A stretch of DNA of 64,000 nt. It comes from Leidyana gryllorum EB-2025a. Taxonomy: Eukaryota > Protista > Apicomplexa. The number at the start of each line of letters is the position of its first letter. Position 1 is the first letter of the stretch. The translations under genes and the position numbers were made by a program. The notes below the pieces were generated by a model, which searched no databases, was not told the origin of the DNA, and was given only the letters and a program-made list of their open reading frames with translations. The stretch spans positions 124,001-188,000 of the forward strand of contig JBLWGC010000047.1 in assembly GCA_048772705.1 (NCBI GenBank). Reading direction: 5' to 3'. Shown here piece by piece: positions 5,766 through 60,900 of this stretch.

Positions 5766-7095
5766 TCAAATTGGGGCAACAGACAGGAGGCAGCCGAGTG
5801 CCCCTAAATAACCATCATGTCTGAGAAAGAGTGCCTCCTGCTTCACTTTGCGACATCTATGATTAGATTTTTGTAACTGGGCGACGAATCGATCAAACTT
5901 GGGTGCCCGGAAGTCTCCGTCTTCGCCCGGATCGACCTCGCTGGAAGACTGAAAGGCTTCGTGAATGTTAGCGTCGTGCCCATACATCGTGTAGAAGACC
6001 ATAGCTTGTGTGATGGTTTGCATAGTAAATGCGTGTCCGTGGATATACTTGCCCCCAAAGATGACCCTGTCAGTCTGATGGACGGCCGAGAGTAGAGAAG
6101 CTAAGTATCCTAGATTATAGGAGACCATTTTGATGGCAGAACGTGCGATATCTTCAGGCTTGGGATTAACAATCGCCTTTTGACGAGTACTCTCGACGTA
6201 TAGTCGACCGAAGCTGCTCCCCAAAGTGTCAGGAGGCAGCTTTCGGCTTCCCGCTGTATCGCCAACGAGATCTGCCACAGTCAAGTCCAGCTTGTCGCTC
6301 CCTGTTGAAAGAAATACTTGTGCACCACCATGGGCTCATAAATTCAACTCACCTTTTTCTGACAAGGACACCACCTCGTCAAAAGATGCAGCGCCGAAGC
6401 ATAATTTGCTCAAGCCCAGAACCGTGCCTCCACCTATACAGGTACCGGATACTCGGGTAAATCTTTGGGGGGCTGTTGCCTGATGGGTTGACGGAGTATG
6501 AAGGTCAGTGTCCCCCATGGTCAGCCTACCTTCAGAATGGAGACACCCGACCCGATATTAACGAGTAAGAAAGGATATACATTCGAGGGCTGGTGGAAAT
6601 CATGTGTGTGTGTGTGTGGGCGGCGGGAAGGCGCGGGAGCGGCCGAAAGTTACTTACCGCAATCGAGCGTTCGCATTTGATCTTGCGGGTTAAATCGTAG
6701 TAGAAAGCTTCGTTTCCGAGACTAAGGACGTATTCCGCGCCACCACATACCGCCGAAAGTTCTTCGACTTTGACTACTTGGCAATCGAGTTTAGTGGTGA
6801 GGTAGTCGAACAATCGGTGAGCACCGCCACCGCTGACTCGGAGTCTACGGGACTCGGGCAGCAGATTGTGATTGAGTATAAACTGAATCAGTCTGTCGGG
6901 GGTCCGGGTGGGGAACCAACGGAATGAAACGTTGTATTTTGTTCCATTATGGGTGAACTTGATTGGAGGACAGTCACAGTTGGTAGAGGTTGGAACCGAG
7001 CTATTAAGACAAGGTTCGACATATGCAACTTTAGCTAAAGTACCACCAATGTCTATACCCACGCGATGTTGAAGCAAGACATCCTCAACACTCAT
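5766..7095 (-). CDS. PANK: Type II pantothenate kinase (fumble family), multi-exon
   Basis: GIDIGGTLAKVAY, SGGGAH, LVNIGSGVSILKV, RVSGTCIGGGT, DLTVADL, SSFG, FLRHDGYLGALG. Confidence 0.93.
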
Positions 7096-7117: not shown

Positions 7118-7899
7118 TCAGGCTTCATCATCAGTAGGAATGCGAATTGAATTGATGCCGGTATCGATAGCGCCTGCGAAAGAAGGGATTGTGATAAATT
7201 GTGATCGATTGTACTCACCAACACCGCGCCAAGACGCGCGTTTCTTCTTGGCCTTTTCAGACCGGAAGTCTTTTCCTTTCACTCTTATCATTTCTTCAGC
7301 GGCTTTGGAGGCCCATGTGTCCCCTCCCTTTGCCCAAAAGGAGTTATCCAGTTTACGTTCAGCAGCTTTCTGGCCCCAATAGTCCAAATCTATCCGCTGC
7401 AGGGGGGCCTTGGAGGAGGCATTCTCAGTCTCTGGGGCCTCGGTGGGAGCATCCTTTTCTCTCTTAGCCTCTTTAGAAGCCTTCTTCTCTTCCTTTTTCT
7501 TCTTCTTGGACGCTGCTTTGTCCGTCACCTCGTCGTCCTGAGCGGTTTCTGAGCGTTTGCGTTTACGGTCTTTCTTCTTCTCAGACTTGGCGCTGGAAGA
7601 GTCTGCTGTTGGTTGGGAACTCTTGTTAGTCTCATGGCGACGGACTGCGACGCTGTTAGCGCGCTGTTCCCTCTCCACTTCCACTGCCAACCGCTCAAAC
7701 AGTGGAGTCAGTGATATCGGACATTCTTCTCCGACCTGGAATAAAACAGTTTGGAACGAGCCAACGCCTCGACGACTCAATTTACCTGTGTTTCCTTGTG
7801 CAGGGCCTTCGCCGACTTCTTAAGGCCGTGTTCCCGGAGATATTTGTGCAGAGCCGATGCCACACAGACCGGGATTGGCCCGTCCTGGTGCTTACCCAT
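7118..7899 (-). CDS. Srp40/Nopp140-like nucleolar protein (N-terminal LisH, C-terminal SRP40_C domain)
   Basis: Exon 1 MGKHQDGPIPVCVASALHKYLREHGLKKSAKALHKE is LisH-like. C-terminus LDNSFWAKGGDTWASKAAEEMIRVKGKDFRSEKAKKKRASWRG..IDTGINSI. Confidence 0.88.
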
Positions 7900-7963
7900 C
7901 GCTTTTTTTTGAACAAGGACTTTGCATGTTGGAGGTTTTTGAGGTGGCGCACAACTGACACCA

Positions 7964-17678: not shown

Positions 17679-17692
17679 GCTTTTTTGTGCTC

Positions 17693-35487: not shown

Positions 35488-38455
35488 CTAACTCACAAAT
35501 AGTGGTGTCATGACCTGCAGTGTATGATGGGGGCAGCTTGGATGGGGGGCTTAACTCACCAGTGTTACGGTCGCTACCAACTTGATCAGCACATGCACAG
35601 AAGGGCCTGCTGTATCCTTGCACGGATCACCCACGGTATCGCCAACCTGTTGTCCAACATTGTTTCTGACAGATCGGATGATCAAACTCACCACAGCGGC
35701 TTTGTGGGCTTCTGAGCCTTTTCCGCCCAGTACGCCAGTCTCGATGTACTTTTTAGCATTGTCCCATGCACCTCCTCCGTTGTTCAGGAAGAGTGCCATT
35801 AAGATTCCAGTGGAAGTGGCGAACATCATGAAGGCTCCCAAAGCCTCAACCCCCAAGAGAGGATTCCCACGCGCCGCGCCAATGAGTCTGCGGAAGTGTA
35901 TACGACCTAAACACGGTCTCTTACTTGAAGCAAAGGCCCACAACTATGGGTGAAAGGGCAGCCACGAGGCCAGGGAGTATCATTTGTCGAGTGGCTGCTT
36001 CACTCACAATCTTGACGCATTTCCGGTAGTCGGGTAGCTCTTGGAAAGTCATTATATTCGGCCGTTCGCGGAATTGCCGTCTGACCTCAGCAACAACATC
36101 GCCAGCGGTGGTTCCCACCGCGTTCATAGCCATTGCAGAGAAGAGGAAGATCGTTGCAGCTCCCAGCAGACCGCCCACAAACACATCGGGGCTCGTAATG
36201 TCTACAATCTTGAACGGCTTCTTTACAAAGATAGACACTTCATCAAGGAAGGCCGAGAATAGCAAGAAGCTGGCCAACGCAGCTGTCCCCACGGAGAAGC
36301 CTTTGGTGTTGGCTTTGGTGACGTTGCCCACTGCGTCCAATCTATCAGTGATTTCCCGAGTGGTACCATCCTAATGTGATGGGAGATGTGTTTCCGACAG
36401 GCGCACACACGCGTTTGTGGTCCTTACCGTTCCAGCAGATGTCATTTCCACAATGCCTCCAGCATTGTCGGCTATTGGGCCGAATGAAGACATGGACAGT
36501 ACATATACAGCTGTGGACAGCATCCCCATGGTAGCAACGGCTGTTCCAAAGAGACCGCCGAGAGCGGGCGATTCTGGTGAAATTCCGCTTACCACACCTG
36601 TGGTTGTGGATTATTCGTTGGTGGTGGGGGTTGCGGCATTATAGTTTTACCTTGGTGATATGCGAAGACGATAGCGATCGAGATCGCGACAACTGGGATG
36701 GCGGTACTTTCCAAGCCAACGGACAGGCCGGCAATAATATTGGTGGCTGGTCCTGAATTACTTGCGGTGGCAATACGTTGTACTTTGGAGTAGTTGTAGT
36801 CCGTATAGTACTGGGTGGCGAAGAGGAAGACGAGGGCGCAGAGGATACCTGAGAGGCCACAGAGGGCGAATCCTCTCCAGGCGTGAGGTGCGTCGGCAGG
36901 GTTGAGGAAGAGGTAGCACAGACAAGTGAAGGAGATAGCTCCTGCAACGCAGGTATAGAAATAGACGGATATCATGTCTTTGAGCGGGTTTTGTGCGCGA
37001 CGACTGTTTGCGGGTGATCCATCTGCGCCGAGTGGCAAGAGTGAGCGGTTTCCACGGCCACCCCCAGGGACCCGGCCGACCGCAAAAACTGCAATAGTGG
37101 ATATTAGCAGGTCGACTGAATGAACGGCGAGAGGAAAGAGGACAAAGCCCGCGGCCGTGCGTTCCGGGAGTTTGGCTTCAGATGCCAGCGCACTGCCGAG
37201 GATCATGGCTGCCAGCATTTCTGCGGCCAATGACTCAAAGACATCAGCGCACTGTCCGGCACAGTCACCAACGTTGTCGCCCACCAAATCAGCAATGACA
37301 GCGGGGTTGCGGTAGTCATCCTCGGGTATTCCGGCTTCAACTTTACCGACGAGATCGGCTCCGACGTCGGCTGCTTTGGTATAGATTCCGCCTCCCAGTT
37401 GAGCGAACATGGCGACCAGACTGGCGCCAAAGCCGAAGCCGACGAGGAGAAGTGGTAACTTGAGGGTGGGTACCCCTGGGAATAAGAGGTGGCAGGTGAG
37501 CATCATCATAGCCAATCCCCCAACAGCCAGCGCTACATTGATGATTGAGCTGAAAGCTCCGCCCCTGAAACAGATTCTCAAGGCTTCCTCGTAGGTTTTG
37601 TGAGCGGCTGCAGCAACGCGGCAGTTCGCGCGTACTGAAACCCAAACTCCGCTGTAGCCCGACAGGGCGGAAGCAAAGGCCCCCATTAGGAATGTGATGG
37701 AGGATACAAAAGCGAACTGGACGGGCGATATGCCCTCTCTGATATCCTGAGGTAAAGAATCGGCCGATCGTACAGCGTAGCAGATGAAAAGGGCAATAGC
37801 GATGACCCCCGATATCTTGAGGATCGAGGAGTTCTGAGTGGCATAGAAACCTTCGGCACCTTCTTGAATGGCTGTAGCTATCTCGACGGTGTGATCGTCC
37901 CCTTCGTCTTGAGCCATTATCCAAGACAACATCCAGAAGGATATCACACAGAAGATTATAGCTACCGTCAGAGCAGCAAAGTTGTATACAACGAAACCCT
38001 CATTAACGGTCAAAGACACAATCAGAAGTAACCCCAGAAGACCAGCGATCAGCGCCGAAGTTGATATAATCCGGGTACTCGGACTCAGTCGTCGGAACTC
38101 ATTCACAGCCATTTCAAAACACCTGATCACCCAGCCGGCCATATTCCAAATCTCTCACCACCACTCACTGATTCGCGATTCCACCTGTCATTGTCATTGT
38201 CCTCGTCCGCTTTCCTTTCCGGGACGAAGGGACGCCTCCTCCAGCAGACGTGGCGTACTCTCCTCCCCCGTTGCCAGACGATGACGACGATGGGTCCAAC
38301 CGTAAAGAGTCATGATGCTGTCCTATCAGAGTCGAAAAACTGCCTTGGCTATGGATAGGCGCAGACGGAATCGGCACCGGAATGCCTCCTCCATTCGTCA
38401 TCAGACCTCCTTCAGCCGGACTGAAGCGCTGAGATGCTCCAGCCGGTGGTATCAT
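35488..38455 (-). CDS. Membrane H+-translocating pyrophosphatase, K+-independent (type II) signature
   Basis: [65 protein letters not shown] (Lys at the K+-dependence position), [24 protein letters not shown]. Confidence 0.96.
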
Positions 38456-42513: not shown

Positions 42514-45234
42514 TCATACATCATCTTCTACCGCCTCTCCTTCATCAGCACTAATGTCTTCAGATGACTCCCGTGATTCCAACTCCTCCTCCACCTCTTC
42601 CACGCCATCCTCTTCCACCGGACTTCTCGTGATCCTGATCTCATAGAAGCTCTGTCCATCCAAAAATACTTCCTCATCGCCTTCGGCTTCCACTCCATCC
42701 TCCAACTCTATGCTGGGCGCAGCCGCGCCGCTCAGCAACAAAGCATCGTACTCCATATCCTGTTTGTCCTCCCAATATGCTCGACCCGCTCCACAATCTA
42801 TCGACAATATATATGTGGCTAGCCAATCCCTTCTCACCTAAGACAACTGTGCAAGTTGCTGTCGCTGACTCCTCCCCATCATAGGCTGTCACCAACAGCT
42901 CTCGCCGAGCTACTGGGGAAACAGCACAAGAGTGCGATACTTCAAATAGTAGAGATCTGGTATCAGCATCTTGGATGTGAATCTGGAGGGGATCACCATC
43001 CGGATCTGACGCTGTGAACAAATCATTGTTGAACTTCTTTGTGTCAACATCAATGTACACACGATCTCGGAATTCATCATACTTCATCACATTTATGCCC
43101 GGATCTGCAGTTTTGCAATGGATCGTGGGTTTGTGGTTCTCCAAACAATCTGCAGCAAGTCAGTCCCATTGCCAATCAATAGATGGAAGTCAACTCACTG
43201 ATAGTCATGGGGCATGTGGTGAAAGTCACCCCATCCGGATTCCACCCTGCGGCCATAACATCCAAGGTCTTGGTGCCGGGTGTGTCGCACGTATATGAAA
43301 AGCTTAACGGGTCCACTACTTTGGTCTGGAAGACTAACCCAACTGACCGAGTTGCTTCCACTGGCTCCACGGCAAAGAGCATGCCGAAGGGCTGGAGTGG
43401 AAGGGGTCTGTGAACAATCAGATCCATGGTCAACGGGAGGCATCGGATCGACGTTGAGGGAATTGCCTTGATGATATCGGTGTAGTCACGCTTGGGTGAC
43501 TCAGCTTGCGTGTCCTTGACTTCCTTCTCTTCTACTCCATCGGCTTTAGGCGTCGAAGACGTGGTGCTGCTGGTCGTGGTAGGCGTGGTAGTAGTTGTGG
43601 TTGTGGTTGTGGTCGAAGTCGTTGTTGTCGTGGGAGTTGTGAACGTAGTTATACCGTTGCCAATGTCAACGATTGTGGGAATGGGAGTAGGTGGCACCAA
43701 TGCTTGATACATACGTTGGATGTCTGTGCGGCTGAGCGCCGGGTTCGAAGCATCCTCCGTTGGATGAGCCAAGGGAGCCTTCTCAACGATCCATGCGTCA
43801 GGGTTCACGTGGGCGGGTGGCAACTCCAGAAACGCACTGTCCTTCCTTATGGCTGGGTAAGGCGTCTCGACGAAGGACCCCTTATTGTCGACTAGTTGGG
43901 GTCTATATTTGAAGGGCCTTTCGGGTCCTTGGGCATCCGCCCACCATTTCTGGAAGGTCATGTCGCTCAGAGTGGCCTGCTCAGGCTGCAAAGTCTTCAT
44001 TCGATCCATGTACATTTGGACCAACTGTTTCAACTCTGGGGGTTCAGCTTCCCCAAAGTTCAACGCCAACCGACTGGCAACTCTGGCTGCTTCGTCGTAA
44101 AGTCCGTCCTCTTCAAACCTCCGACCAGGTAACGAAGGATGAATGACGCCTTGCTCAACATCATGAGCCCCCTCGCCACGGATCCGATTCAACCTTGGTT
44201 CGAAGTAATCAACCATTTCAGCCTCCCCGTTAGCCACTGGTAGACCATATGGTGCGCTGGCGGTGGGCCATTGAGCGTTAATCCCAATTCTGGGCTGGCC
44301 CACCAGAATCTGAGCTTGATCAACGGTGCTTGCAGCGGTAGAAACGGGAATCTGACCGATTGGGACATGAACCCCAGAATATGCGTTGACCCTATTGAGT
44401 GTAGGGGTGGGTGCGATGCAACCTGGGTGATTCATCTATGTAGGGAGTTCGATTTGGACGGACTCACTGATCGAAGTCTTGCACAGACTGGTTCCTTTGC
44501 TCAGCAACCCTCCCGAGGTGTCAGTGACAAATACCTTGAACTTCAAATTAAAGACACCGGGAGCATCACACGAGAACTGAAAGGTACCTGGAACCTGTGT
44601 GCGGAGCGTGTTGGATGAGTATGCAGCATTGTTCATTCACCTTCGATAGCGTTTGCAATTCCTTGACATGTATCAGTGCTGAGTCTGGATTCAATCCTTG
44701 AGGCAGGGTGACGTTAAAGATGTCGTTACTAAACCCATGGGCGTTGATGTTCAAAACCTCTCCGATGAACATATCGCGTTGGAAAGCCCGGCATGCCACG
44801 ATGGGCTGTGCTGGGAATAGTGAAGCAGGTAAGACGTGCGCCGCTGCATTCAGGAATTTTCCTTCCGCAGATCGGCTCTCAGGTGCTGCCGCAACTGGCA
44901 AAGTGAGTTTGGGACCAGCATGGATCTGTTCAGATCGGTGTTGTGCGTGTGCTTGCACGTGTTCCACAGAGTGAATATTTGCGTCAAAGCCTGGTGGTAA
45001 GGTTCTTGGGTTGCAGGTCTTGATTGAGAGCAATTGGATGCCATTCAAGAAGTTGGGCCGAGACAATCCGGTCAGGGCGCCAGCAAACGGAGCAGAGCAC
45101 TGTTCGTCTCTGCTACAATCACTATCAGCGAAGCACATCCGTCCTAGAATGCTTTGAAATGGACCCTTGGCATCTTCGTTCGCACGCACAAAGAGCTGCA
45201 AGAGCCCAGATAGCCATAATGCAGCCGCCAGCAT
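42514..45234 (-). CDS. Secreted/surface adhesin-like protein: Cys knot, three Cys-bounded Ig/cadherin-like domains, Thr mucin stalk, acidic tail
   Basis: Signal peptide MLAAALWLSGLLQLFVRA; CFADSDCSRDEQC. Shared F.F/Y.CD.PG...L motif in domains 1 and 2. Cadherin-like NHKPTI..TASDPDGDPL..VTAYDG. Poly-Thr run. May splice further 3'. Confidence 0.65.
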
Positions 45235-45305
45235 GTGTCGCCCCGGGAGCGAACGTGTTTGCAAGAGACGCTAACAAACGCAATCAGACCTTACACCTAC
45301 TTTGA

Positions 45306-47787
45306 ATGAGGCGCCGTATCACGTCGGCTCTATTAACGCTGGCACTATGTGGTTGTGTGACGAGTGCACGAAGATTGAGATCACATCGCGCTTGGTTGGC
45401 GAGGTACGGGCAGCCACTAACGCTGGAGCCAGCTGCGTTCTGCGATATGCGGGGTGTTACTATTGCTGTTCCCACCACAACCATTCATACGAGGGAGTCG
45501 CCTGCCTCGGTGGCTTGGGGAAGTTTGGCAGGGTCCCGCCAGGTTCAACTTGGGCCTCGAGGTCCCGAGTGCGCTGCTCGCCTCGAGCCGGGATTCTTCA
45601 GAAGGGAAGGGAATGACACGACCGTGGACGCATGGCTGGCCCGGGCAACTCATACGGGTTGTCAAGGGCACTCAGTTTATACCGCTGATTCTATTATCCA
45701 TTCGAATAGATGGACAATCTCTTGGCCGGAGCGAAACAGCTCCACAGAGGGCGAACGAAGACCAAATCTCAATGTTCTCGTATCTTGCACATGCTCAGTT
45801 GAGACGGAGGAATGCAGTGCAAACGCTCGATGGGAGGATCCAATTCTATCACCAGTTTTGGACGCGGACGGGTCCGAGAGTTTGATAGGGGGCTACAGTG
45901 TTAATTCGGCGGCTTTAGTGGGCCCTCATGCAGACGTCGACATTTTGCCAGATCTTGAAAGGTAAGAGCTGCCATCGGAATCTTCATGATTGTTTGGCCA
46001 ATAGTCGCTTCCATTTTGAAACCTACGGCCCACCTTCCGAGCATTTATGGCCCTGGAAGTGTGACGCGTCAACGCCTGATGGACGGAGTCACCCTCTGTT
46101 GGTGGCGGGATGTCCTGTGTCGGACAAATTGGACTTTCAGGTGAGGGTATCTCCATATTGGGTTGTAAATGTTGGCTTGCAGACACATGCTGTGACTTTG
46201 CGAGGTCTATTTGGTCGCGAGCGGACGTTTTCGCAGTCGAAGGGCCATTTGGCCTTCAGTTTAAAGGCTGTGGGGTTCGAAGGAGCAGAATCTGCCTTGG
46301 TGATGGTGACGTGTGAGATGACGACTGCAGCATCTGCTCCCAAGTTGGAAGAGATCTGCCATGATCAGAAACTTCTTGTCCCATCACCCAGAGCAGTTGG
46401 GTTGGAGGGTGGCAATTCAAATCGTGCAAAAAATCCAGGTTCGTTGGTGGTCGGCGGACAAAGTGTGGAGTCAGTTGACTCTGCTGGCAGAGAGGGATCT
46501 GCTGAAGTTTTCAGACGATGGGAGAAGTCGTTGAAACGGGAGGGGAGAAAAGGTGCTCGACGGCGGAATGGTGGGGGCGTCGGCGATCCGGGCGCAGGTA
46601 TGGAGGGAGGTGCCCCCCCGCGTAAGCTGTTGACCCAAAAGGAGGCTGAGGAGGAAGCAAGAAAGCGTTTCGATGCTATTTCGCACACAATCGACTTGCC
46701 CGATCTGACGGAGCATCTGGAGAGTATAGATTTCATGGACGACGATTTGGATGACGAAACGATGATATTCTTCAATCCTGGAAGTGTCGAGAGCATGTTG
46801 CCGGAGCCGGTGGCACGTTACAAGCCTCCGGCTTTGCTTTCTGTGAAGAATGACTATGCTATTGACAATTTCGGGGTGACTTGGAATCGTGGTGTCAACA
46901 ATCGTCAAACGGCTGTGAAGGTCGGGAACGATGCTGCTTGGGTTGGAGCGGATGTGGCTCTGCAACAGCGTCGGGCCACAGCGACAGTGGGATGGAAGGA
47001 CTTCCACATGAATGCTCTCACAAGTTTGGAGCAGCAGGAGTTGGGTGTTGGGGTGAAGTACGGCAAGTATGGTGTGGCAGCAGTGCGGAACAACCAGGAA
47101 GATGCCACTTCGATAGAAGTGAACACACCGTATGTTGCGGTTGGTACTTTGGCGAACTTTTTGGATCGTAACTACGGACAGAAGATTCGCATAAAGGACT
47201 TTGAGATTGTTGGTCGTCACGATTTCAACGAGCACATCTACCAGGATCCTAACAAACTGGCATCAGAGTTTATGATCAGTTACAAAGATTATGGTGTTGC
47301 GGTGGGCAGCGATGTGGTTGATACTCGTTACGGTGTCAGCATTGGTATCAAAGGGTATCAATTCAGTGTTCTTCGGGACTTTGATGAACGACAAACCGAC
47401 TTTGTGGGAAATTTCGGAGACGGTTGGCAACTATATGTCAGCCAAGATGCTCCTGATCAATACTCCAAGTCGATGTTCGGTCGTGTCGGTTTCGGGAATT
47501 TGAAGAAAGCCTATGTGCTCGCTGGCGCTGGTGTGGGTGATGACGGCATCCCAGAGTTCAATGCACGGTACCACGGGAAACGTGCTGCTATTGTCATGGA
47601 TCTTGAAGGATCCGGTGTTGGTGATAGAACTTTGATCACCGGATTCTCGTTCGGGAAGTTTACTTACGTTTGGAATAGCAAGTTGGCACTGGACAACTTG
47701 CGAGTACCCCTTATGGTCGGGGTTGAGCCGTTACAGGTCAAGAACCTTCTCACCCCTGGATCGCTCCCGACTCCACAGCACTTCTAA
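45306..47787 (+). CDS. Signal-peptide protein with a Cys-containing N-terminal region and a C-terminal tandem beta-hairpin (beta-barrel-like) domain, 2 exons
   Basis: Signal MRRRITSALLTLALCGCVTSA. Intron ~45962-46004 joins ORFs 45306 and 45928. About 22-aa alternating-polarity hairpin repeats from ~46855. Confidence 0.75.
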
Positions 47788-47820: not shown

Positions 47821-49244
47821 ATGAACTCTTTGCACTCTTCTCCATCATTTTCCCAACTTAACCCCTCCAATCAATGCCAGGATCCACCTTCAACCTCTTA
47901 TCAACCACAACTCCAGGATCCGTAAGTGGCAATCTAATAGCCACCTCATAATAATTAAATCAACAGTCTAATTGAATGGGTCGGTACCGCTATAAGAAGT
48001 CAATGGTCCACTGGTGCCACACCGGGCGACCTCTACTCTGTAATGGGTAACATCGAAAGATGCGTAGAAGAACACAGGCGCAACCCAGAGTCCAGTCACA
48101 TATCCAGACACGCGCCCAAGAACACCAAGTTCTGGACTCCCCTTCCTATGCGGGAGGCCTTCATGAGAATGGATGCCAAATACAAGATAAGTCAACGACG
48201 CTGGATTCCGCCCAGCAACCACGAGATCCGCCAAACCCTAAATCTGGCACAAGTTTTGGTCACCTGTAAGAATCTACGGCTGATCACATTCGATGGGGAT
48301 GAAACCTTATATCCAAACGGTGCTAATTTTGAGGACCCCGAATTGGCTAACCTTATCATCAAATTGTTGCGGAACGACGTCCACGTCGCTCTGGTCACTG
48401 CTGCGGGATACGGGCAAGACCCCGAGCATTACGAGGTGCGCCTCGGTATATTGCTAACCGCCCTCAAAGACGCCAATCTGGGACCCGAGAAATTGGGCCA
48501 ATTCATGGTATTCGGAGGAGAGGCTAATTACTTGTTCAGGTGAGTGCTAGACTTCTGTCTGCCTTCGCTACTGATGTATTTCGCCAGACTTGGTGAAGAT
48601 TGCGGTCTTCACTGTGTTCCATATGACGAATGGCAACGTCACTCCCCCATCGTTCTCACCAAGGAGAAGGATCTGGAAGAAGCCACACGGCTGCTCAATA
48701 CAGCCGAGGCGACTCTGCGAGATGCTGTAACAGAGCTTGGACTGCGTGCGCGAGTTATCCGCAAGGAAAGGGCCGTAGGAATTGTCCCAGGCGGACTGCA
48801 AGGCGTCCTGAGGGTCCCAACTGGATCGGGCTCCAAGTCCATCAGGTCAGAAATTCTTGAGGAAGCTGTGGCACGGGTTCGCGAAGCGGTCAATCGAATT
48901 GGTAAGTTCCATAGTTCACATGGCTTGGAGTACACTCAAAATGACCATCATCAGATCCGAAGATCCCCTACTGCGCTTTCAATGGAGGCTCGGATGTCTG
49001 GGTCGATGTCGGGAATAAGGCAATGGCGTTGGAAGTATTACAAAGCATATTAAATATTCATCCTTCAGAGTGCTTGCATCTAGGTGACCAGTTCACACAA
49101 TCAGGAAACGACATCACCGTGCGCCAAAAATCGCCATGTATCTGGGTGATTTCCCCAACTGAAACCAAAGCTGTTCTTCGACGCTTGATAAAAGGAGGTG
49201 ATATGGAGCAGCAAGTAGATAGTGACGGAAACGAAAATTGGTGA
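47821..49244 (+). CDS. ISN1: IMP-specific 5'-nucleotidase (HAD superfamily), multi-exon
   Basis: DPLIEW, FWTPLPMREAF, ISQRRWIPPS, LITFDGDETLY, VTAAGY, FGGEANYLFR, FNGGSDVWVDVGNK, LHLGDQF..GND. Confidence 0.93.
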
Positions 49245-49249
49245 AGGTG

Positions 49250-49536
49250 CTAAACAGATTGTGTTTGATCATCCAAGACGTGTAGTGCTTCTTGAAACGC
49301 AAGCTTGAGCTGCGTTATCTCGCTCTGGTATCTTTCTGCGAGATGCTCCTGCTCCTTCAACCGCAACTGATTGCTCTGTTCAACATCGCAGTTCAGTCAT
49401 CACTTCTTACCGATAAATCGGATTCCATTTGCTCAAACTTGGCGTCAATCATCTCCAAGATCTGTGATAGTGTCTTCGTGTGTCCATGTATCTCATTTGA
49501 GCACTCAATAAGTACTTCACGAGTCAGGTCAGCCAT
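49250..49536 (-). CDS. Small (~76 aa) acidic coiled-coil protein, 2 exons, absent from the ORF track
   Basis: MADLTREVLIECSNEIHGHTKTLSQILEMIDAKFEQMESDLS |GTAAG...AAG| EQEHLAERYQSEITQLKLAFQEALHVLDDQTQSV*. Confidence 0.55.
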
Positions 49537-51775: not shown

Positions 51776-53585
51776 ATGGCTGCCACGGCTGCGCCAGTGA
51801 CCGCCTTTATGGCGGATAGAGAGAGTGGAGAGGATGTTCGTTCCCAGAATGGTGAGTGTATTGGTGTGGCGTTAGCGTGACATGATGTTGCAGTGACTGC
51901 GGCTAACACGCTTGCGAATATTCTGAAGAGTTCATTGGGTCCCCAGGGTTTGGACAAGATGCTGGTGGACGGTATCGGCGAGATGACGATTACGAACGAC
52001 GGTGCAACCATTTTGAAGCAGTTGGAGGTTCAGCACCCTGCTGCTAAGGTGTTGGTTGATCTGAGTGACTTGCAAGATCAGGAAGTAGGTGATGGAACGA
52101 CTACCGTGGTGTTGTTGGCTGCTGAGCTGTTGAAGAGGGGCAACGCTTTGATTCAACAGGGTGTGCATCCAACGTGGGTGGTGACAGCATTCAAGTCGGC
52201 AGCCAAAGAGGCGGTGAAGTACATTCAGTCGAATTTGACGATGCGATTGGATCAGAATGCGGATCCGGAATTACTGAAGAACATTGCTCGTACGTCTTTG
52301 AGTTCCAAGTTGATTGGCGGGGAGGACGATTTTTTCGCCAATCTGGTGTGCGAGGCTGTGCCAAAAGTGCGTTTCGAGGATGAGAAGACAGGCAAAGTGA
52401 AGTATCCGGTTAAATCCATAAACATTCTCAAGACTCACGGGAAGAGTACTCGGGAATCTATGGTTGTGGACGGTTTTGCTCTGAGTCACATTGGGCGAGC
52501 CGCTCAAGGGATGCCGATGAGAGTGGAGAAGGCGAAGATTGCCATTCTCGAGTTTCCTCTGAAACAATATAGAGCACAACTAGGCGTCCAAATATTGGTC
52601 AAGGAGGCTGAGGAATTGGAGAAAATCCGTCTCAAGGAGAAGGATATCTGCAAGGACAGAGTGGAGAAGATATTGGCGGCTGGTGCCAACGTTATCCTCA
52701 CTTGTGAGGGCATTGATGATATGGCTCTCAAGTACTTTGTCGAAGCCAAAGCTCTGGCTGTCCGACGTGTGCCCCGCGCTGATCTCAGGAGAATCGCTCG
52801 GGCCACTAACGCTCGTCCGGTGATTACTATGGCCAAACCAGATGGTGACGAGGAGTACTTTGATCCCGCCTGGTTGGGTGAGGCTGACGAAGTGTGCGAG
52901 GAGAGAGTCGGCGATTGGGATTACATCTTTGTGAAAGGATGCCAAGGTGGCCGAGCTGCGTCCATTATCCTGAGAGGAGCCAATGACTACTTGGTGGACG
53001 AGGTCGACCGCTGCGTGCACGATGCCATCTGCACCGTCAGTCGCACACTCGAGTCCAACCAAGTGTGTCCCGGTGGTGGTGCCGTGGAGACTGCGTTATC
53101 GGTCTATCTAGAGGACTTCGCCCGTACAATGGTGAGTTTGTTTGGTGGTCAAGTGTTCTCACATCGTGTGTCTGTGTGTGTGTCTTAGGGTTCCAAGGGG
53201 CAAGTGGCTGTTGCCGAGTTTGCTGAAGCTCTGAACATCATTCCGAAGACTTTGGCTGTGAATGCGGCTAAGGACGCTACTGAGCTGTTGGCTAAACTGC
53301 GTGCTGCTCACTGGAGGTCTCAGAAACAAGATTTCGCTGAGGAAGACGTTCAGTACAAGTGGTATGGATTGGACTTGGTGAATGGAACTGTTCGGAACAA
53401 TCTGAAGGCCGGCGTTCTGGAGCCGGCTATGATTAAAATCAAAGCTATCCGGTAAGTAATGTGATGGTTGGGGTCACACGACTGCAATTTTTGAAATCAG
53501 GTTTGCGACCGAGGCTGCTGTGACCATCCTGAGGGTGGACGACATTATCCGGTGTCATCCGGAGGAGGATATGGGTCAGCAGTGA
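51776..53585 (+). CDS. TCP1: T-complex protein 1 subunit alpha (CCT1)
   Basis: DRESGEDVRSQN|VTAA..KSSLGPQGLDKMLVD, TNDGATIL, GDGTT, KYPVKSINILK, FATEAAVTILRVDD. Confidence 0.97.
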
Positions 53586-53597: not shown

Positions 53598-56500
53598 TCA
53601 GATGCAACTGTCATCTGGCTCTTCTTCTTCGAGGGGATTGTTGTCGTCATTCGTGGGGTTAAGGAGGATATCACGTAGATCCTTGAGACTAGCGCCACCA
53701 GCGTCAACTTTACCGTTCTCGAGCGCAGCGGCAGCCATCATCCTTTTGACCTTTTGCTTTTTGACCACTGCCTCTTCCACTGTATTCCGCGTTACTACTC
53801 GGTACACTCTAACAGGCCGGGTCTGTCCAATTCGGTATATACGGTCAATTGCCTGATCCTCAACATGGGGATTCCACCAGGGGTCCATAACATACGCCAC
53901 GTGAGCGGCCGTCAGAGTCTGTGCAGCATCAGAATGTGAAACAAAGGGGGGGGGAGGGTGTTGACTTACCAGTCCAGTTCCCGCAGCTTTAATGCTGGCC
54001 AACATGACCATATTGTGATTGACATTCTGAAACTCGTTGACAATGGTTTCTCTCTTCTTCATCGACAACTTTCCATCAAACAAACTCGTTCGGACTCCGC
54101 GTCGTGTGAGTGCCTCCTGAACGTGCGTCAGCAGCTGCGACAAACATCATTTGACTCAGAATCTTCACTACAAAGTTGATTGGCTTACCTTTACGAATGT
54201 AGAGAATACCACAATCTTGTTGGGTTTGCCATCTGACTGCTTTTCGAGGAGATCTTGGGTTATTCGGTCACAAAGACCCCGAATTTTACTCGATTCCACA
54301 AATGGCCTCTCTTCTTCGCAGTCAAACACGGAATCCTTCGCTGCCTCTCTCATCCGTTGAGCCTGGCGCAGTTGAGCTTCAGATTTTCGGACCAATTGCT
54401 TCTTGCTGAGAGGCTTGCGACATATGGGGCAGTGGGCATTGATCTGTTTGGTGGTGCTGTCGAGCCATTCTGAGATGCACCCAAAGTGAAACAGATGGGA
54501 GCAGCCACTGATCGTGTCCGGTGTGTCTCCCAAACATATTGGACACACATCCGCCAAAGAGTCTCCTTCAAGTAAGGAGGCCATTTGATTGGTGCCCAAC
54601 AGCTGATCGATGAGTGGGTTGAGGTCTTTATCGTTCCGCAAAAGTATATTGTCGAGTTGCACCCGAATATGATCAGCTACAACACTCTCAGTGTTGGCCA
54701 TCAGACGTAGATGCGTTAAAACAGTCCATAGCTGGGCAGCCTGTGCCTTATCAGCTCGTTGAGCGGCCTTTTGAGCTGTCCGAGCCAAAGCTTCATACCG
54801 CTCCCACTCCTCCGCGTTCATTTTGATCCAAACCATATGTATGGTCTTTGGCGGAAGTGTGCCCAAATCGTTGGATTCGTTGCTATTGGCGCCGATTTCG
54901 ACGGTCTGAATGGTCTCAGTGGTGTTCAAGTTGAGATTTCCAGTCAGCGAGCTCGCAGGTGAGCTGTTGCTGACGGAGTCGCTGTTAGGTGTTGAGCTCG
55001 TGGCATTATTGGAGGGATCTTCTGCACTGGAAGTGCCGCCGGCTTCAGCAGCCGTGTCGATCCTATCGAGAATGGTCTTTTTCCGTCTGAGGAGTATCCA
55101 TTGAATAGCGGCCTGAATTCGGCACCGAGCGCGTTTGTCCTTGAGGAGGTTTTTCTTTGCGTCTCCGCCGAGCGCACTCTTGAAGTTTTGTTTGGTATCA
55201 AAAGGTTGGACTCTTAAAAAGTTCAGCAAGGGTCCGAGATCTTCAATCTTGTTTTGGAGCGGAGTACCGGAGAGACACCATTTGTAGAGCCCTTGCAGTT
55301 GGAGGGTGGCAACAGTGGTGCGGCTATTGGCGTTCCGGATAGTGTGTGCTTCGTCCAATATGATGCGTCTCCAGAAAATATTGTGGAGAGCGCTGGGCTC
55401 GAGTTTGCTGTCCATTTGGGAAGCCGCTTGGCAGACGGTACTGTAAGTGGTAACGACGAAAAGCTTTGTGGATAACGACAGCGTATCGACGTGATTCCTC
55501 TCCGTCCCGTAGTAGGAGAAGATTAGATCTGAATGAAGGGTGGTGTGATCACGTAACTGTGCTCTCCAGGTATTGAGAACGGATTTCGGACAAACGATGA
55601 GTGTGGCATCACTTTTGACGTGGGGTTTGCCGTCGACCATAACTTGATCCTCTTCGGGTACCTCTTTGTTATGTCCGGCTCGTCCTCCCCGTTTCCTGCG
55701 TTTCTCGTTCTCCATCTTGAAGAGGCTCTGGCCGTGTTCCTCAATCTTTTCCTGAACCACAGGATCCAAAAGAGCACAGGCGATAGACTGTATAGTCTTT
55801 CCGAGTCCCATATCATCAGCCAAGATACCTCCTTTGGGGGGTTTGAGGTCTTTGACAAACACGTGGTGCCCTCCCAAGATACGGCATTCGGCAACTTCGT
55901 CTCTGACGGGGTGCCGTCTCCATATCTGCCATTCGCCTTTCTCTTTCAACACTTCTCTCAAATCCAATCGCGACTGGTCTTCCATTTCTCGCATCCACCA
56001 CACGCCTTTGCGTTGGTGTGCGAGCAGCTCAGACTTGAGACCTGGGACTTTGGCATCGACGTCCTGCATATTGGCCCATTCCTTCATGGAGAACATATCA
56101 TTGATCCGGTTGGCCAAATCTTCGGTGTCTTCTTCGACGGTGGCCTCAACGGGACGTCTCAGAGGACCAGCGTCCTCGTTGTTGGCCTCCCCATTGAGCA
56201 GAGAGGCGGGCAATTTCTGGAACCCGTCTTCGTCCAGTTCGTAGTTCTCGTCTTCGACTGCTTGCAGAAAGTCGTCGTCCAGAAGGGTTTGTTGGGAGAC
56301 TTCGGAGAGATTATGGCGCGCGAGCTGACAGGAAGTGCTCAAAGTATTGTCATCGGGGCCGGGTGTGAAGACATTGAGGGGCTCAAAAGCAAAACTTCGA
56401 AAAGTATCTTTCCCACGCGGCAAAGCCGACCACCCGAACGATCCCGCAGGGGGGGGCGGGGAACTGATACTGAATCGCGCTCGGTCAGAGGGGAACACAT

Positions 56501-57911
56501 AGTCGACATTGGGGTACTCTTGGAACCCATTATTATTGGTGCGATCTCTTCGGGGGCAGAGACAGGAGAGGACGCAGTCTCGACCATAAAAGTTGGTTGC
56601 GAGACGGCCTGTGGTCAAAGTGAGGGGGTTAACGGCTCCGAAGATACTTTGGGAATCGTCAGCAAGTCGCCGTCGAGCATAGGTGGCCCAAACCCGGTCG
56701 GAGACGAGACACTGTAAAAGTTCATTGGGTTCGAGGGCATCGATATAAATGCTGACGGGTTTCCGATACCGTTGATACGAAGAATCGCTCTCCGCAAAGG
56801 TGATAACGTGATCGCCCCCTTCGAGTTTCGCCATTGTCCGGGCTGGAAACTCGTAGCGAGTTCGGAAGAGCACCGGTTGGGTACATATAGTCTCGACAAT
56901 AGCGCTCGCCACGGGAGGCAGAAAGCCGGCGACTTGGGTCGAAGTGCTCGTCATCAAAACTCCAATGCCGGCCCGCCATTGCATTGTAGACTCATCGATC
57001 CAACTGAAGAGTCGAAATCTCATTTCCCGATCTAAATGAGCCAACCTCCAGCAGTTCTCAAACTCTTGGGTGGGTTCCACGTAGGTGTGAATGATAGCGC
57101 AACATCTCATATTGTCAGTATACGTCATGTGACGGTAGTCCACGACTCCTCTCTCCCATATAATTCCACAGTCTCCGTTTCGGGTCGGAGACATCAACTC
57201 CGCCACCGACCGGTGCTGTTGGTGGCCACCCGCCTCACCGTCATTTTCGAGCGAATTTGTAGTCGAAGCAGCGCCCTGAGGGACAACAGCGCCCTCACTC
57301 TCCTCGTCATCGTCGTCGTCGTCTATTGCAATTGCCTCCTCCGGATTCAACGCGTCCAAATCAACCAATACTGGAGATGGACGGGGGGGGCGAGCCGCCG
57401 ATCCGGAAGCAGTCGTCGAGGGGGGATGTTGATAGCCATCCAAATCACCAATCTCGCGTCCATTCAACTCTATGATTTCACACGAACTACTCGCCGGGGT
57501 ACACTCTCCCCCACTGCTCTCTGCCCCCACATTCACACTCTCTCGCAACGGCGGTAACTCGGGGGTCTCAAGTTGAGCTTCAGCTTCAGCGGGCGGTAAC
57601 ATTTCCTGATCCTCCCGGATCGCAGTCTCGGCGGCGGGTGGAGAGTTCACATCACCATCAGCGACGCCCACAGACTCCGCTTTCTCGGCGTCTCCCTCAG
57701 TCCCGCCGCCGCCGCCGGTACTGGTGGTCGACCAGCTACCTTTGATGAGAGTTGTCTCCTCCTGACGACCGGTCAAGAATAGACTGGTGGCTTCCTCTAC
57801 ACTCAATTGGGGTCCACGGGCTAAGGACCCGTCAAGTAGTCCTTCATCTCGACGCACACGTTTCGACTCTGGTTCAGACCATGAGGTACTTGAAGCTGGC
57901 CGAGGGGGCAT
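53598..57911 (-). CDS. Rad5/16-like SNF2 helicase with RING finger
   Basis: GGILADDMGLGKT, LIVCP, RIILDEAHTIRN, WCLSGTPLQN. RING CPIC..C.H.FH..C...CPICR is inserted between the ATPase lobes. DPWWNP.VEDQAIDRIYRIGQ. Confidence 0.93.
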
Positions 57912-57965: not shown

Positions 57966-60900
57966 TCATAAGGCTATGTTGGCGGCGAAAGGACTGAATG
58001 ACGCTGGCGTATTCGGCAACATGGGAGCCATCCCAATACTCATTAGTCCCGATACTGCGTGTGTGGAATGGGACCCCATAGGTTAAAGCAACTTTAGAAA
58101 ACCCTCACCGAGCTCATTCGCAGAATGCTTATCTTTGCGCTCGCTCTGACTCTGAGTCTGCTTCGCAACCTCCTTCTCCAACTTGTCCAGCCTCTGACGC
58201 AAAGTGCCTACGCTCTGAATCATAAACGGCATCAACTCGTCTTGGTACCCAGCCAGCCATGCCAACTCCATGGCCACCTCTGGCCGCACCAACGGATTGC
58301 ACACCTGCACAACGCAACAAATCAAGTCATTCAGTCAGTCAGTCATTCAGTCAGTCAGTCAGTCAACCAGTCAACCCCCAAACTCTCTCCCCAATCCTAC
58401 CTGCAGACAGGCAGCAAAGTGCTGCGGGCTCTTGAGCTCATCAACAAAGTACTGCAACAGCGCTTCAGCGATCGCCGGATCACCCGAAGTACGAGCGATC
58501 GCCATCGCCTGCTCGTACTGATGGAACTTCTTTGCTAACTCGATCGCGTGAGTATACTTCCCATTCTTCTCGTACAACGACAAAGCCAATTGCTTCATCT
58601 CAATCAACTGCATAACAATGTGACGACCGCAACAATGACCACCGAGTGACAAACAATGACCACCGAATGACAATGACAGAACCCCAACAGCAACCGGAAC
58701 AATTACAGAACCCCAACAGCAACCGGAACAATGACAGAACCCCAATAACAGCCGACATATAGATCATAACAATCCACAGCAAACCGAAAACATCGAACAT
58801 CGATCGAACCACCGACCAAGTAACTCACCTCGTGTTTCTCGAGCTTCGCAGCCAATTCTGGTTGATCAAAGTTGTCATAAGCCGAAATACTCTTCCGTAG
58901 CTTCTCAACGTCCTTTCTGTCCAGATACAGCTCGTGCAACGCGTCATTCACAATAGTCGTGTGCTCGTTCGCACGCGCCTGCTCGTCCTCCAGCCAGCTC
59001 GCCACCAATGCCATCGGACTCAAATTAATTCGAGACGCCTCCAATGACAAACGATGACTCTTGATCGTTTGGATCACTCGCAGGTGTTCGATCTGACCAC
59101 TCAGAGCCGACAGTAACTGATTCAGCATCGTCGGATGCTCCTCCAAGTACAGCACCAATGCTTTGTACAGAATGTCCAGATTCGTCACTTTTTGGAGAAT
59201 AGACAGGAACTGCTCGTGCTCCCAAGCGATACTGCTGTGGTTCAGAATCACACTGGCCGCCTGGTCGTACTCGTTGTACGACAGATACAACAACACCTCT
59301 GCTTTCCACAGCTTCTCGGCCTCACAAACTTTGATCAGTTTAGGCACATTCAGCCGCCCAGCCGTCACCACCGGAGCACTCTTGAGGAAGTCCAACAACT
59401 GCTCGGGTTTGTACTTGGCGTACACAATACCCATCTCTGTATACAGGCCAATGTTACCCTTCCCTGTGGCCACACCCGCCTCCAAGAACTCCAACAGCTC
59501 ACTCGAGTACCCAGCCGACTCGTAAGCGTTGATCAGCCGCTCCAAATGATCCGAGTTGTTGATAACGTTCAGACCAGCCGAATGGGCAATCTTCAACTGA
59601 CCATTAGCCACACTCGCCAGGGCCACCTCAGTCCAGGACTTGGCACTCCCAGCTCGCTTGGCACTCTCATAAGCCGCGTTGTACTCACCCAACTTGATCA
59701 GACACAGAGTCAACTTAGTGTGGTTAGGCACCTTGGCATAGAAAACTTTCGCCGCCTTGTAACTGTTCGTGGCCCTCTCCACATCGCAGTCAGCCTCGGC
59801 TGCCAAACCCTCTTCGTACAACCGATCACCAATCATCTGAGTGTTGGCTGTATGGGCCCCGACCAAGAAGGTTTCCAGAGGACTCCACTGCCCAGTCCGG
59901 GCCAAACAGTACGCCAACTCGGAGTCCACGTCTCCCATTGAGCCAACTCGTTGAGCTCGCAGCTTCCGCAGAAACTCAGCGAGTTCCGAGAACTGTTTCG
60001 CTTGTTTGGCACATTGGATCACCCGTTTGTACTCAACGCACTTCTCAGCTTTGCCGTAAAACAACATTGCTTTCACCACCCATTCGCCTGCAGCAGTCTC
60101 CTCTCCGGCTGCCAGTCTCTCTTCGGCCTTGTCCAGCTCTGCGAGGGCCAGAGACTGCCATACAGTGGTATCCTTGGCCTTCTCGGCATAGGCCTCGGCT
60201 TGGCTGAAGTCCTGCATCTTGTACAACAGAATGTCCAGTGCCTTCTCGTTCATGTTGAACTTTTTGTACACCATCAGTGCTTCTTCGTACAACTTGAACT
60301 CCTCACTCGTGGCCACAGCGGCAACTTGGTGGGGGTCAAACGCGTCCAACCGGTTGATATAATCCTTAACCTTCTCAGGCTTGGCCGACATGGCAGTCAA
60401 CAAGAGCAAATTCTGGAACGCCGACGAGTTACTCAGAGTCTCGCCATCCAGTCCGGAACCGCTGAAAGTCACAGTCTTCTGGAGAACAATGCGTTCGAGC
60501 AGTTCCAATAGTTCACTCTCCAACTTGGCGTCCACGAAGGCTTTGACTACGCACGAGATCTCATCCACAGCAGAAGCTTCGGACAAAGCGGTGGCAGTAA
60601 TCTGATCGACCAGTTGACGACGGTATTCCTTGTTGTCGTCGCTCAACACCTGAGCCCACACCTCAGGACTCTTGCGCTGGATCAGATACTTGGCCTGAAT
60701 TCTGAACAGACCATTGCGATTGGTGATGCTGATCAACTCTGCGTCGCATTGGCCTCGCATATACGCGATGACGGCCATATGGGGGTCTTTGTTCTCGCAG
60801 TATTGACCAATAGTTCGGGGGTCATAGTTCAGATTGGTGCTCAGGAACTTCTCGGGGTCGCGGTTGGTGTCGATGTACACTTTGGCAACGGCATTGTTCA

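Follow-up and report, generated by a model that had tools for sequence, protein, structure and literature searches.

A predicted 24-strand amphipathic beta domain joined to a putative ZP-like module in a gene family of apicomplexans and chrompodellids

We analyzed a 64,000-nucleotide stretch of a Leidyana gryllorum contig (the window) and found a gene at 45306-47787 of the forward strand, whose three exons encode a 798-aa product ending in a predicted sheet of 24 antiparallel, amphipathic strands. This C-terminal beta domain founds a previously undescribed domain family. It is preceded by a signal peptide, a Cys domain and a charged linker, and is followed by a short tail.

The preliminary description of this DNA had placed the signal peptide, the Cys-containing domain and the charged linker with PRKLL ahead of the repeats, and all of these are real, given two introns. 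The open reading frame 45928-47787 (ORF) is in frame with the 46855-47784 translation, and joining the upstream signal-peptide and Cys parts to it requires two short GT-AG introns. Exon 1 (45306..45961, with a GTAA donor at 45962) is an ORF containing the start codon, the signal peptide (about 45306-45368; a basic n-region and a hydrophobic core, with small residues leading up to the probable cleavage point) and, from the conserved Cys domain, the first half with six Cys. As observed, it aligned with residues 8-188 of the intronless homologue P0004 (E 4e-32). Intron 1 (45962..46004, 43 nt, GT..AG) accounts for the frame shift between exons 1 and 2; the 90% relative L003 has at this position a 38-nt GT..AG stretch of little identity, flanked by sequence differing mostly at third codon positions. 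Exon 2 (46005..46140) encodes the core of the ZP-C-like subdomain (W-P-W-x-C ... L-x-x-A-G-C-P-V-S). It matched 15 family members by phmmer at E below 1e-4, and its G-C-P column is invariant in the Cys-domain alignment. Intron 2 (46141..46182, 42 nt, GT..AG) is in frame and stop-free, and reading it as plain ORF adds 14 false residues, which are absent from the homologues P0003 and P0004; the same stretch is diverged in L003. Exon 3 starts with the end of the ZP-C-like subdomain (46183..46365; F-S-L-K-A-V ... C-E-M ... I-C), which holds the last two conserved Cys, and runs to the stop codon at 47785-47787. All features lie on the plus strand. P0004 aligned colinearly across both intron junctions, and L003 carries diverged, indel-bearing sequence precisely at both introns. 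The searches were run with single exons or homologues as queries, and an exact look-up of the ORF matched no recorded entry.

The beta domain (46834..47688) is repetitive. BLOSUM62 self-similarity of the 320-aa C-terminal part peaked at lags of 11, 22 and 44 aa (z 3.7, 4.8 and 3.9, respectively, over a background of 300 shuffles), and the five example peptides from which tandem hairpins had been proposed are all present in the 46855-47784 translation, indicating that the hairpin repetition is real. AlphaFold2 predicted 24 strands with four sequences (pLDDT 65) and the same 24 strands with a 37-sequence alignment (pLDDT 91.3, pTM 0.77). The predicted fold is an all-antiparallel meander, as had been anticipated, although it comprises 12 hairpins and 24 strands rather than about 11 and about 22. 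The proposed extent was likewise revised at its end, where the last 32 residues (47689..47784) form a low-confidence tail (pLDDT 45-63) and not beta structure; this tail shows a partly conserved N..P...G..P pattern, a short predicted helix and a non-conserved terminal residue. The strands have 7-10 residues each; they are joined in alternation by short turns (2-3 residues) along one edge of the sheet and longer ones (4-13 residues) along the other. When the family alignment was analyzed strand by strand, every strand proved amphipathic, but a plain lag-2 hydrophobicity autocorrelation over the whole beta domain was not significant. Over the 24 strands and 37 sequences, face A consists of 51% VILMFC and 12.5% YW with 5% charged residues, and face B of 37% GAS and 27% charged residues. 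The hydrophobic face is continuous across the sheet, with 2-3 aliphatic residues and one aromatic per strand. In many members, a conserved helix-like stretch precedes the domain, and no TM helix was found downstream of the signal peptide in complete family members.

Comparison with known families returned no confident Pfam or PDB match, soluble families included. Pfam showed no match for the beta domain of this gene at E up to 1, none for the 37 family beta domains at E up to 10 except two chance-level CW_7 matches (E 0.095), and nothing bearing on the beta domain among the long relatives or ten neighbouring ORFs. PDB sequence searches with the ORF and the domain profile gave chance matches only, and Foldseek found no global match against PDB with either model (TM at most 0.32) or against BFVD. 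OspA, barrels, propellers and MORN proteins appear side by side in the weak Foldseek lists (TM 0.1-0.32). OspA with its engineered extensions and MORN proteins, the top matches by probability, share tandem hairpins of ~22-23 residues with our domain. However, the TM-score was about 0.2 with an rmsd of about 23 Å, no MORN Pfam match was obtained, and their sheets are polar on both faces, whereas one face here is 64% hydrophobic or aromatic and 5% charged. A six-bladed propeller, prompted by the 44-aa period and the propeller matches, was rejected because the inter-unit connections have only 4 residues and no propeller match was significant. RHS/YD, CW-binding and MORN repeats were also rejected, since their signatures are absent from the 37 members.

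An exhaustive search identified 63 relatives carrying the beta domain, which is C-terminal in all of them. The named relatives are all apicomplexans (gregarines including Gregarina niphandrodes, Rhytidocystis, Cardiosporidium, Toxoplasma TGME49_287490, Neospora and Besnoitia) or chrompodellids (Vitrella, Alphamonas and Piridium). Signal-peptide-like N-termini were observed in complete homologues from Gregarina, Vitrella, Cardiosporidium, Rhytidocystis, Digyalum, Alphamonas and Neospora. The coccidian members keep RRL and the beta domain and wholly lack the Cys domain, indicating that the beta domain needs no ZP partner. Most named relatives come from gregarine trophozoite or whole-culture transcriptomes; thus, the family is not oocyst-specific. 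Literature searches found no paper on the Toxoplasma, Gregarina or Besnoitia gene identifiers and nothing relevant on a described beta-barrel family of this kind. The family includes TGME49_287490, an unstudied gene.

In animals, ZP modules form extracellular filaments by polymerisation, as in egg coats, cuticles and uromodulin, and they contain four Cys in ZP-N and four (or six) in ZP-C. The Cys domain of our family spans ~280 positions with 10 conserved Cys, is common to 25 members and begins with a conserved H-x-Y-W-x-x-x-Y-G ... A-W-C motif. When its profile was searched against PDB, uromodulin was the sole credible match (E 0.12). With the ZP-C half alone, uromodulin was matched at E 0.013 and each of the four Cys had an aligned partner; the last two, encoded by exon 3, fell on the final two Cys of uromodulin ZP-C. 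The six Cys of the first half were not matched to ZP-N. The Pfam ZP-C model (PF00100) scored member P0041 at 21.3 bits against a cut-off of 24.6 (E 3.2e-4) and matched neither the other members nor pieces of this gene, and Pfam ZP-N gave E 0.15 in one member. UniRef names the Vitrella member P0015 as a 'ZP domain-containing protein'. No counterpart of the external hydrophobic patch of ZP precursors was identified, and a word search with the Cys-domain profile returned its own first sequence only. These matches, sub-threshold everywhere, lend moderate support to homology, and we regard the domain as a probable divergent ZP-like module, a character that the preliminary description had overlooked. 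In its canonical form, the ZP module is considered specific to metazoans, choanoflagellates alone having ZP-like relatives (PMC13361971). A literature search for ZP domains in Apicomplexa found nothing relevant.

The linker (46366..46833) is charged and poorly conserved. It contains a polybasic stretch (46534-46569), an R-K-L motif (46621-46629) and an acidic helix-like stretch (46651-46758). The PRKLL pointed out earlier coincides with the position of a family-wide RRL motif, which had gone unnoticed. RRL occurs in 15 of 22 family linkers compared with 1.9 +/- 1.25 in shuffles, and in 15 of 21 linkers compared with 4 of 21 protein remainders three times longer; the next commonest RRx in the linkers is RRR, with nine. 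R-x-[KR]-R was found in 9 of 22 linkers against 3.9 expected, and R-x-L-x-[EQD] was not enriched (6 against 4 expected). The local version in this gene, R-K-L-L-T (46621-46635), is neither strict TEXEL (RRL) nor full PEXEL (RxLxE/Q/D). In Toxoplasma secretory proteins, the protease ASP5 cuts at a constrained RRL motif, which may be N- or C-terminal (PMC4764566). Like the TEXEL/PEXEL substrates of ASP5 and plasmepsin V, the members of our family are signal-peptide proteins with a conserved R-R-L-x-x in a disordered stretch, and in ASP5 substrates, too, the motif can be far from the N-terminus (PMC4764566). In contrast to those substrates, this gene has R-K-L. We consider the linker motif, conserved family-wide, a putative TEXEL-like, cleavage-type site. 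Most family members are free-living or extracellular and have no host-cell export, so such a motif would serve maturation rather than export.

We tentatively favor, at a little less than even chance, a reading in which the product is a processed extracellular coat or wall precursor. It would be a secretory-pathway precursor with two folded modules, a disulfide-rich ZP-like one and then the 24-strand beta domain, separated by a disordered charged linker with the TEXEL/PEXEL-type motif and the polybasic stretch. An ASP5/plasmepsin V-like or furin-like protease would cut the linker, much as animal ZP precursors are cleaved between ZP-C and the membrane anchor. Once released, the ZP-like part would, by the same analogy, polymerise to build a coat or wall outside the cell. 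In place of the TM or GPI anchor, the beta domain would use its hydrophobic face to hold on to a membrane or to a layer of lipid or hydrophobic wall material. Uromodulin, ZP3 and cuticlins, as animal ZP precursors, share with our family the signal peptide and the Cys-rich module, a second half that aligns with ZP-C (four Cys, L-I-x-N-G-C-P and F-S-x-x-x-F), a basic cleavage-type motif after ZP-C and a C-terminal part outside the polymerising module. However, the similarity here is below curated thresholds, the conserved Cys number 10 instead of eight, and a 290-aa beta domain stands in the anchor position instead of a TM helix or GPI signal. Furthermore, the basic motif is RRL in most members rather than R-x-K/R-R, and our proteins come from alveolates, the canonical module being regarded as metazoan.

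Sporulation is the period of sporocyst wall formation. Microarray data for the Toxoplasma homologue (TGME49_087490/287490; Table S2, PMC3278417) showed background levels in tachyzoites, bradyzoites and day-0 oocysts and a modest, 2.5-fold rise in sporulating oocysts. The homologue was found neither in the covered parts of the oocyst proteome supplement nor in the supplement of the cat-stage RNA-seq paper.

Instead of anchoring, the beta domain could be a soluble structural or binding domain, folded as a two-layer or flattened closed sheet, that buries its hydrophobic face within its own fold or by self-association and binds wall polysaccharide or protein. We consider this the less likely account, though one to be taken seriously. 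Soluble sandwiches typically have eight-residue strands and V/I/L/F/Y cores, and the hydrophobic face is the more class-conserved one (7-class entropy 1.08 against 1.36), as expected of a protein core. In addition, conserved Arg/Lys-Glu/Asp residues on the polar face could form surface salt-bridge ladders, and Y-G-containing hairpin repeats recall glucan- and choline-binding repeats. Nevertheless, Foldseek returned no sandwich, solenoid or beta-taco, no lectin or cell-wall-binding Pfam family was matched, and invariant glycines on the polar face are odd for a plain solvent-exposed surface. All 24 strands also have the same face polarity, which forces about 100 hydrophobic positions onto one side.

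A bilayer-spanning 24-strand beta-barrel of the secretory pathway, serving as a pore or as an autotransporter-like translocator and anchor for the N-terminal module, appears unlikely, and its more specific form, a monomeric barrel in a secretory-route or cell-surface membrane that anchors or passes a polymerising ZP-like module, slightly more so. In composition, the two faces are similar to those that outer-membrane barrels turn to the lipid and to the lumen. Consistent with a barrel are also the even strand number, both termini lying on the same side, one edge with short turns and the opposite one with longer loops, aromatic residues at both strand ends, and a pTM indicating a compact object. 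In the model, DSSP extends strand 1 from residue 4, whereas its hairpin partner pairs only residues 6-13; this would imply a second partner, most simply strand 24, and hence closure. VDAC, OccK, AlgE, FimD and LptD were among the weak Foldseek matches, and the helix-like stretch before the domain recalls autotransporters and VDAC. However, the strands are short and bear conserved Arg/His/Asp/Asn at their ends, leaving to each strand's aliphatic residues and single aromatic a hydrophobic belt estimated at roughly 13-20 Å along the tilted strand, a thin span for a bilayer. Without a plug, a barrel of 24 strands would be an enormous pore, and we know of no beta-barrel insertion machinery in the ER or plasma membrane. 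TM-scores to real barrels were only 0.12-0.26, the 24-strand usher included, and autotransporter, Porin_3 and Omp85 signatures are absent.

Known barrels differ in detail as well. VDAC/Tom40, the usher (24 strands) and LptD (26 strands) are up-and-down meanders with short turns, and VDAC/Tom40 and the large bacterial barrels appeared as weak Foldseek matches with probability up to 0.94; however, their TM-scores were 0.17-0.26 (VDAC 0.25) with rmsd of 12-22 Å, and our family has shorter strands, an ER signal peptide and no sequence similarity to them. VDAC has 19 strands in contrast to the even 24 here, where Porin_3 was not matched. Omp85 proteins (Sam50/Toc75) are 16-strand barrels with POTRA domains, and mitochondrial and Omp85 barrels have no ER signal peptide. 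Type V autotransporters, like our protein, place an extracellular cargo at the N-terminus and, after a linker, end in an all-beta meander whose amphipathic strands are even in number. The membership in this class raised earlier nevertheless fails, as there are 24 strands against 12 (Va) or 16 (Vb), no PF03797 match, and a non-conserved 32-aa tail after the last strand in place of a terminal aromatic signal; the route here is moreover a eukaryotic secretory one, with no insertion machinery known for it. What is left is a loose analogy of N-terminal cargo and C-terminal beta module.

The sheet might instead wrap a hydrophobic lumen or groove and carry or transfer lipid, for example to a lipid-rich wall layer. 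The continuous hydrophobic face is about one leaflet thick, coccidian oocyst walls contain a lipid layer, and the Toxoplasma homologue is induced in sporulation; however, the PDB fold search showed no likeness to RBG/VPS13, LptA/TamB-type or large-lipid-transfer folds, and we judge such a role improbable. An envelope channel of a cryptic plastid, as suggested earlier, or of the mitochondrion is very improbable: it draws only on the Arg-rich stretch after the signal peptide and on the general rule that eukaryotic beta-barrels are organellar, whereas the family occurs in Gregarina niphandrodes, regarded as a plastid-less eugregarine, the Arg-rich stretch aligns with the conserved start motif of the Cys domain and is not a transit peptide, the disulfide-rich N-terminal domain and the RRL motif point to the secretory route, and Porin_3, Omp85 and POTRA signatures are absent.

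For these organisms, the family adds a 24-strand amphipathic beta domain, confidently predicted, which has no relative in Pfam or PDB. Eukaryotic beta-barrels are, as a rule, confined to organelles of endosymbiotic origin, and a membrane-spanning beta domain in this family would be an exception. Among eukaryotic transmembrane beta-barrels not assembled from toxin-like oligomers, such a barrel would be the first one made outside mitochondria or plastids, and its partner would be a ZP-type module from a non-animal lineage. Should the ZP module of these alveolates prove genuine, the evolutionary account of this matrix-building domain would have to be revised, and it would be a pointer to filament-forming coat or wall proteins of parasites that have so far escaped recognition. 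Furthermore, RRL is conserved in organisms that lack host-cell export, which suggests that ASP5/plasmepsin V-type cleavage originated as a routine step in the maturation of secreted matrix proteins.

The β-hairpin feature of the preliminary description formed the last part of an open reading frame (ORF) at 45928-47787 (+), which contains exon 3 of a gene starting at 45306. In our model, exon 1 (45306-45961, +) begins with a typical signal peptide and is followed by a 43-nt GT..AG intron (45962-46004, +) that shifts the reading frame. Exon 2 (46005-46140, +) and exon 3 (46183 to the stop codon at 47785-47787, +) are separated by a 42-nt GT..AG intron (46141-46182, +), which is in-frame and stop-free; a plain ORF listing read through it unnoticed, adding 14 false residues. 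The coding sequence comprised 2397 nt (798 aa). The intronless homologue P0004 was colinear over both junctions (exon 1 at 8-188, exon 2 at 191-238 and exon 3 from 240). At L003, the locus of a 90%-identical relative, GT..AG stretches of diverged sequence and unequal length occupied both intron positions, and the exon differences from the window fell mostly at third codon positions. The three-exon model is thus supported by two independent comparisons, and the feature is real and lies within a well-supported gene. Queries in all searches were single exons or homologues. The same kind of very short intron may be hidden in other genes of the window.

Next, we analyzed the C-terminal β domain. 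All five example peptides of the preliminary description were found in the translation. BLOSUM62 self-similarity over the C-terminal 320 aa peaked at lags 11, 22 and 44 (z 3.7, 4.8 and 3.9, respectively, relative to shuffles); therefore, the 22-aa hairpin unit is real and nested in a two-hairpin super-repeat. AlphaFold2 gave 24 strands already with four sequences (pLDDT 65) and the same 24 with 37 sequences (pLDDT 91.3, pTM 0.77; all five models above 86). The hairpin repetition thus stood as first described, with its number corrected from about 11 to 12. In the model, strands were 7-10 residues long; turns had 2-3 residues on one edge and 4-5 on the edge bearing the termini, which also carried longer loops (one of 13 residues, one of 8), and the last 32 residues of the protein formed a low-confidence tail. 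When the family is aligned, the residues of each strand fall alternately on two faces, one hydrophobic (V/I/L/M/F/C 51%, Y/W 12.5%, charged 5%) and one small or charged (G/A/S 37%, D/E/K/R 27%), the latter with several near-invariant Gly, Arg, Glu and Asp.

When the 37-sequence model was compared with the PDB by Foldseek, no match had an E value of 1e-3 or lower and no TM score exceeded 0.32; the BFVD offered no better match. The weak matches mixed single-layer sheets (engineered OspA, MORN1), membrane barrels (VDAC, OccK11, AlgE, FimD, LptD) and β-propellers; any antiparallel-meander structure gives a weak Foldseek score. The rmsd was 23-24 Å to elongated OspA sheets compared to 12-16 Å to compact barrels or propellers. 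Strand 1 was marked extended from residue 4, although pairing with strand 2 within the hairpin accounts for no more than residues 6-13; strand 1 therefore needs another ladder partner, for which strand 24 is the simplest candidate. Together with the pTM and the lower rmsd to compact folds, this suggests that the predicted sheet is compact and probably closed. A β-propeller is unlikely, given links of only four residues between four-strand units and the lack of a significant propeller match. Memberships of the porin, Omp85, MORN and RHS families all failed on the features tested.

A word-index search recovered three relatives from Logan assemblies, P0003 among them, and the exhaustive profile search yielded 63 proteins with E no higher than 1e-3 (43 below 1e-30), many of the short matches being fragments. 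They reached 1406 aa, and the β domain ended at or near the C-terminus in nearly all. Taxonomic placement rests on the 30 of these 63 for which names were recovered. Apicomplexan members came from Gregarina niphandrodes (GNI_077960), Blabericola, Selenidium, Digyalum, Siedleckia, Rhytidocystis, Cardiosporidium (three paralogues), Toxoplasma (TGME49_287490), Hammondia, Neospora and Besnoitia, and chrompodellid members from Vitrella (two proteins), Alphamonas and Piridium; none of the 30 names belonged to Plasmodium, a piroplasm or Cryptosporidium. The Gregarina protein was the closest named relative (41% identity), which makes a gregarine-like apicomplexan the probable source of the window. No Pfam model matched the 37 domain copies, the β-domain profile matched no PDB sequence, and the relatives' gene identifiers did not occur in the searchable literature. 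The family is undescribed, and its architecture is striking and confidently predicted. Some relatives' gene models appeared imperfect. The Toxoplasma (P0071, TGME49_287490, 405 aa) and Hammondia models lack a signal peptide and seem to miss their 5' part; for Neospora, an alternative model (P0075, 1324 aa) encodes a signal peptide, ~1000 aa of disordered sequence lacking Cys, and a single RRL. P0002 as called follows the family up to the conserved T-G of strand 23, beyond which its sequence is unrelated, and its locus (L002) probably holds an unrecognised intron at ~6420-6544.

The Cys domain was not private to the window gene, since an iterated profile recovered its ~280 positions in 25 family members, with ten conserved Cys. 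The motifs W-P-x-x-C, L-I-x-N-G-C-P, F-S-x-x-P-F and C-x-M ... C marked its second half. Against the PDB, the whole-domain profile matched a single sequence, uromodulin (E 0.12), and the second-half profile matched uromodulin again through a different entry (E 0.013); both matches lay on the C-terminal half (ZP-C) of the egg-coat-type ZP module, with all four Cys aligned. Pfam ZP-C scored 21.3 bits on the homologue P0041, just below the 24.6 cut-off, ZP-N appeared once among the members (E 0.15), and UniRef labels one Vitrella member 'ZP domain-containing protein'. This moderate evidence makes it fairly probable that the Cys domain is a divergent ZP module. According to a 2026 review (PMC13361971), the canonical module is a metazoan character with ZP-like relatives only in choanoflagellates, and our literature search yielded no publication describing ZP domains in Apicomplexa. 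What was once proposed as a possible transit peptide, the Arg-rich segment that follows the signal peptide, aligned to the conserved first motif of the Cys domain.

The linker that connects the last Cys of the ZP-C-like part to the β domain varied from 17 to 431 residues and was 17-41% charged and otherwise unconserved. RRL occurred in the linkers of 15 of 22 proteins (1.9 +/- 1.25 in composition-preserving shuffles). This enrichment was specific: the next commonest RRx, RRR, occurred in 9 linkers, and only 4 of 21 remainders of the same proteins had RRL, though three times longer. The PRKLL noted earlier in the linker is present and corresponds to the window's version of this motif, R-K-L-L-T (46621-46635); two close relatives have R-M-L-L. 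R-x-[KR]-R was likewise enriched, occurring in 9 of the 22 linkers (3.9 expected), and the window linker contains a polybasic stretch (46534-46569, +). In Toxoplasma, RRL is known as TEXEL, and the Golgi protease ASP5 cleaves its substrates at this motif, which may be placed N- or C-terminally (PMC4764566). Coccidian members, which have a signal peptide and a long Cys-free disordered region and lack the Cys domain, keep exactly one RRL, ~135 residues before the β domain, so the motif travels with this domain. A helix-like motif, S-R-[LIV]-K-x-L-x-x-A-V-x-x-G-x-F-G, was conserved ~30-60 aa before the β domain in the linkers of several gregarine-type members (P0030, P0032, P0036, P0041, P0043), and in the window an acidic helix-like stretch (46651-46758) occupies this position. 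This motif might pack on or in the β domain.

The window is an ordinary gene-dense segment of a eukaryotic chromosome (GC ~52%) with housekeeping genes for a G-patch protein (17687-19456, +), an ankyrin protein (20707-22167, +), H+-pyrophosphatase (36589-38142, -), an SNF2/RING helicase (54168-57911, -) and clathrin heavy chain (58703-62755, -); it also holds a TCP-1 chaperonin gene (51893-53188, +). An ISN1-like (IMP 5'-nucleotidase) gene lies downstream (48043-49250, +), and another follows the gene of the homologue P0003 at locus L001, where ISN1 occupies 7341-8552. TCP-1, ~4 kb downstream in the window, is also the next gene (TGME49_087500; 287500 in the newer numbering) after the Toxoplasma homologue TGME49_087490, the old identifier of TGME49_287490 (Table S2, PMC3278417), which suggests retained microsynteny across Apicomplexa. 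In the same table (Fritz et al. 2012), TGME49_087490 scored 3.59, 5.67 and 5.21 in day-0, day-4 and day-10 oocysts, 3.24 in tachyzoites and 3.69 in bradyzoites; expression thus rises above background, by 2.5-fold, only during and after sporulation. Just upstream and divergent, an ORF (44566-45264, -) showed a signal-peptide-like start and several Cys and no Pfam match. A 254-aa ORF opposite the β-domain coding region (46471-47235, -) is most likely a shadow ORF, because the plus-strand product is strongly conserved.

Animal ZP precursors are cut between ZP-C and the membrane anchor and then polymerise. The window protein resembles them in its order of signal peptide, ZP-like module, basic cleavage-type motif and C-terminal non-polymerising part, but has a 24-strand amphipathic β domain in place of the anchor. 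By this analogy, we tentatively propose a processed coat or wall precursor whose β-domain hydrophobic face would attach to a membrane, a lipid layer or a hydrophobic wall layer. A soluble domain with this face buried internally or by self-association is a somewhat unlikely alternative. A genuine bilayer-spanning barrel would accord with a closed sheet and is nevertheless improbable, ranking below peripheral or self-buried arrangements because the hydrophobic belt is merely 2-3 aliphatic residues and one aromatic per strand, flanked by charged conserved residues, 24 unplugged strands would form a very wide pore, and insertion machinery for β-barrels is not known on the secretory route. A lipid carrier is less probable still, the plastid envelope channel once considered was rejected, and autotransporter membership fails on the tested features.

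The β domain is accompanied by what is probably a ZP-like module and by a conserved motif resembling TEXEL, and the function of the protein is inferred. As a coat or wall precursor, the protein would be processed to yield a coat or wall component, and the continuous hydrophobic face of its β domain may grip a membrane, a lipid layer or a hydrophobic layer of the wall.
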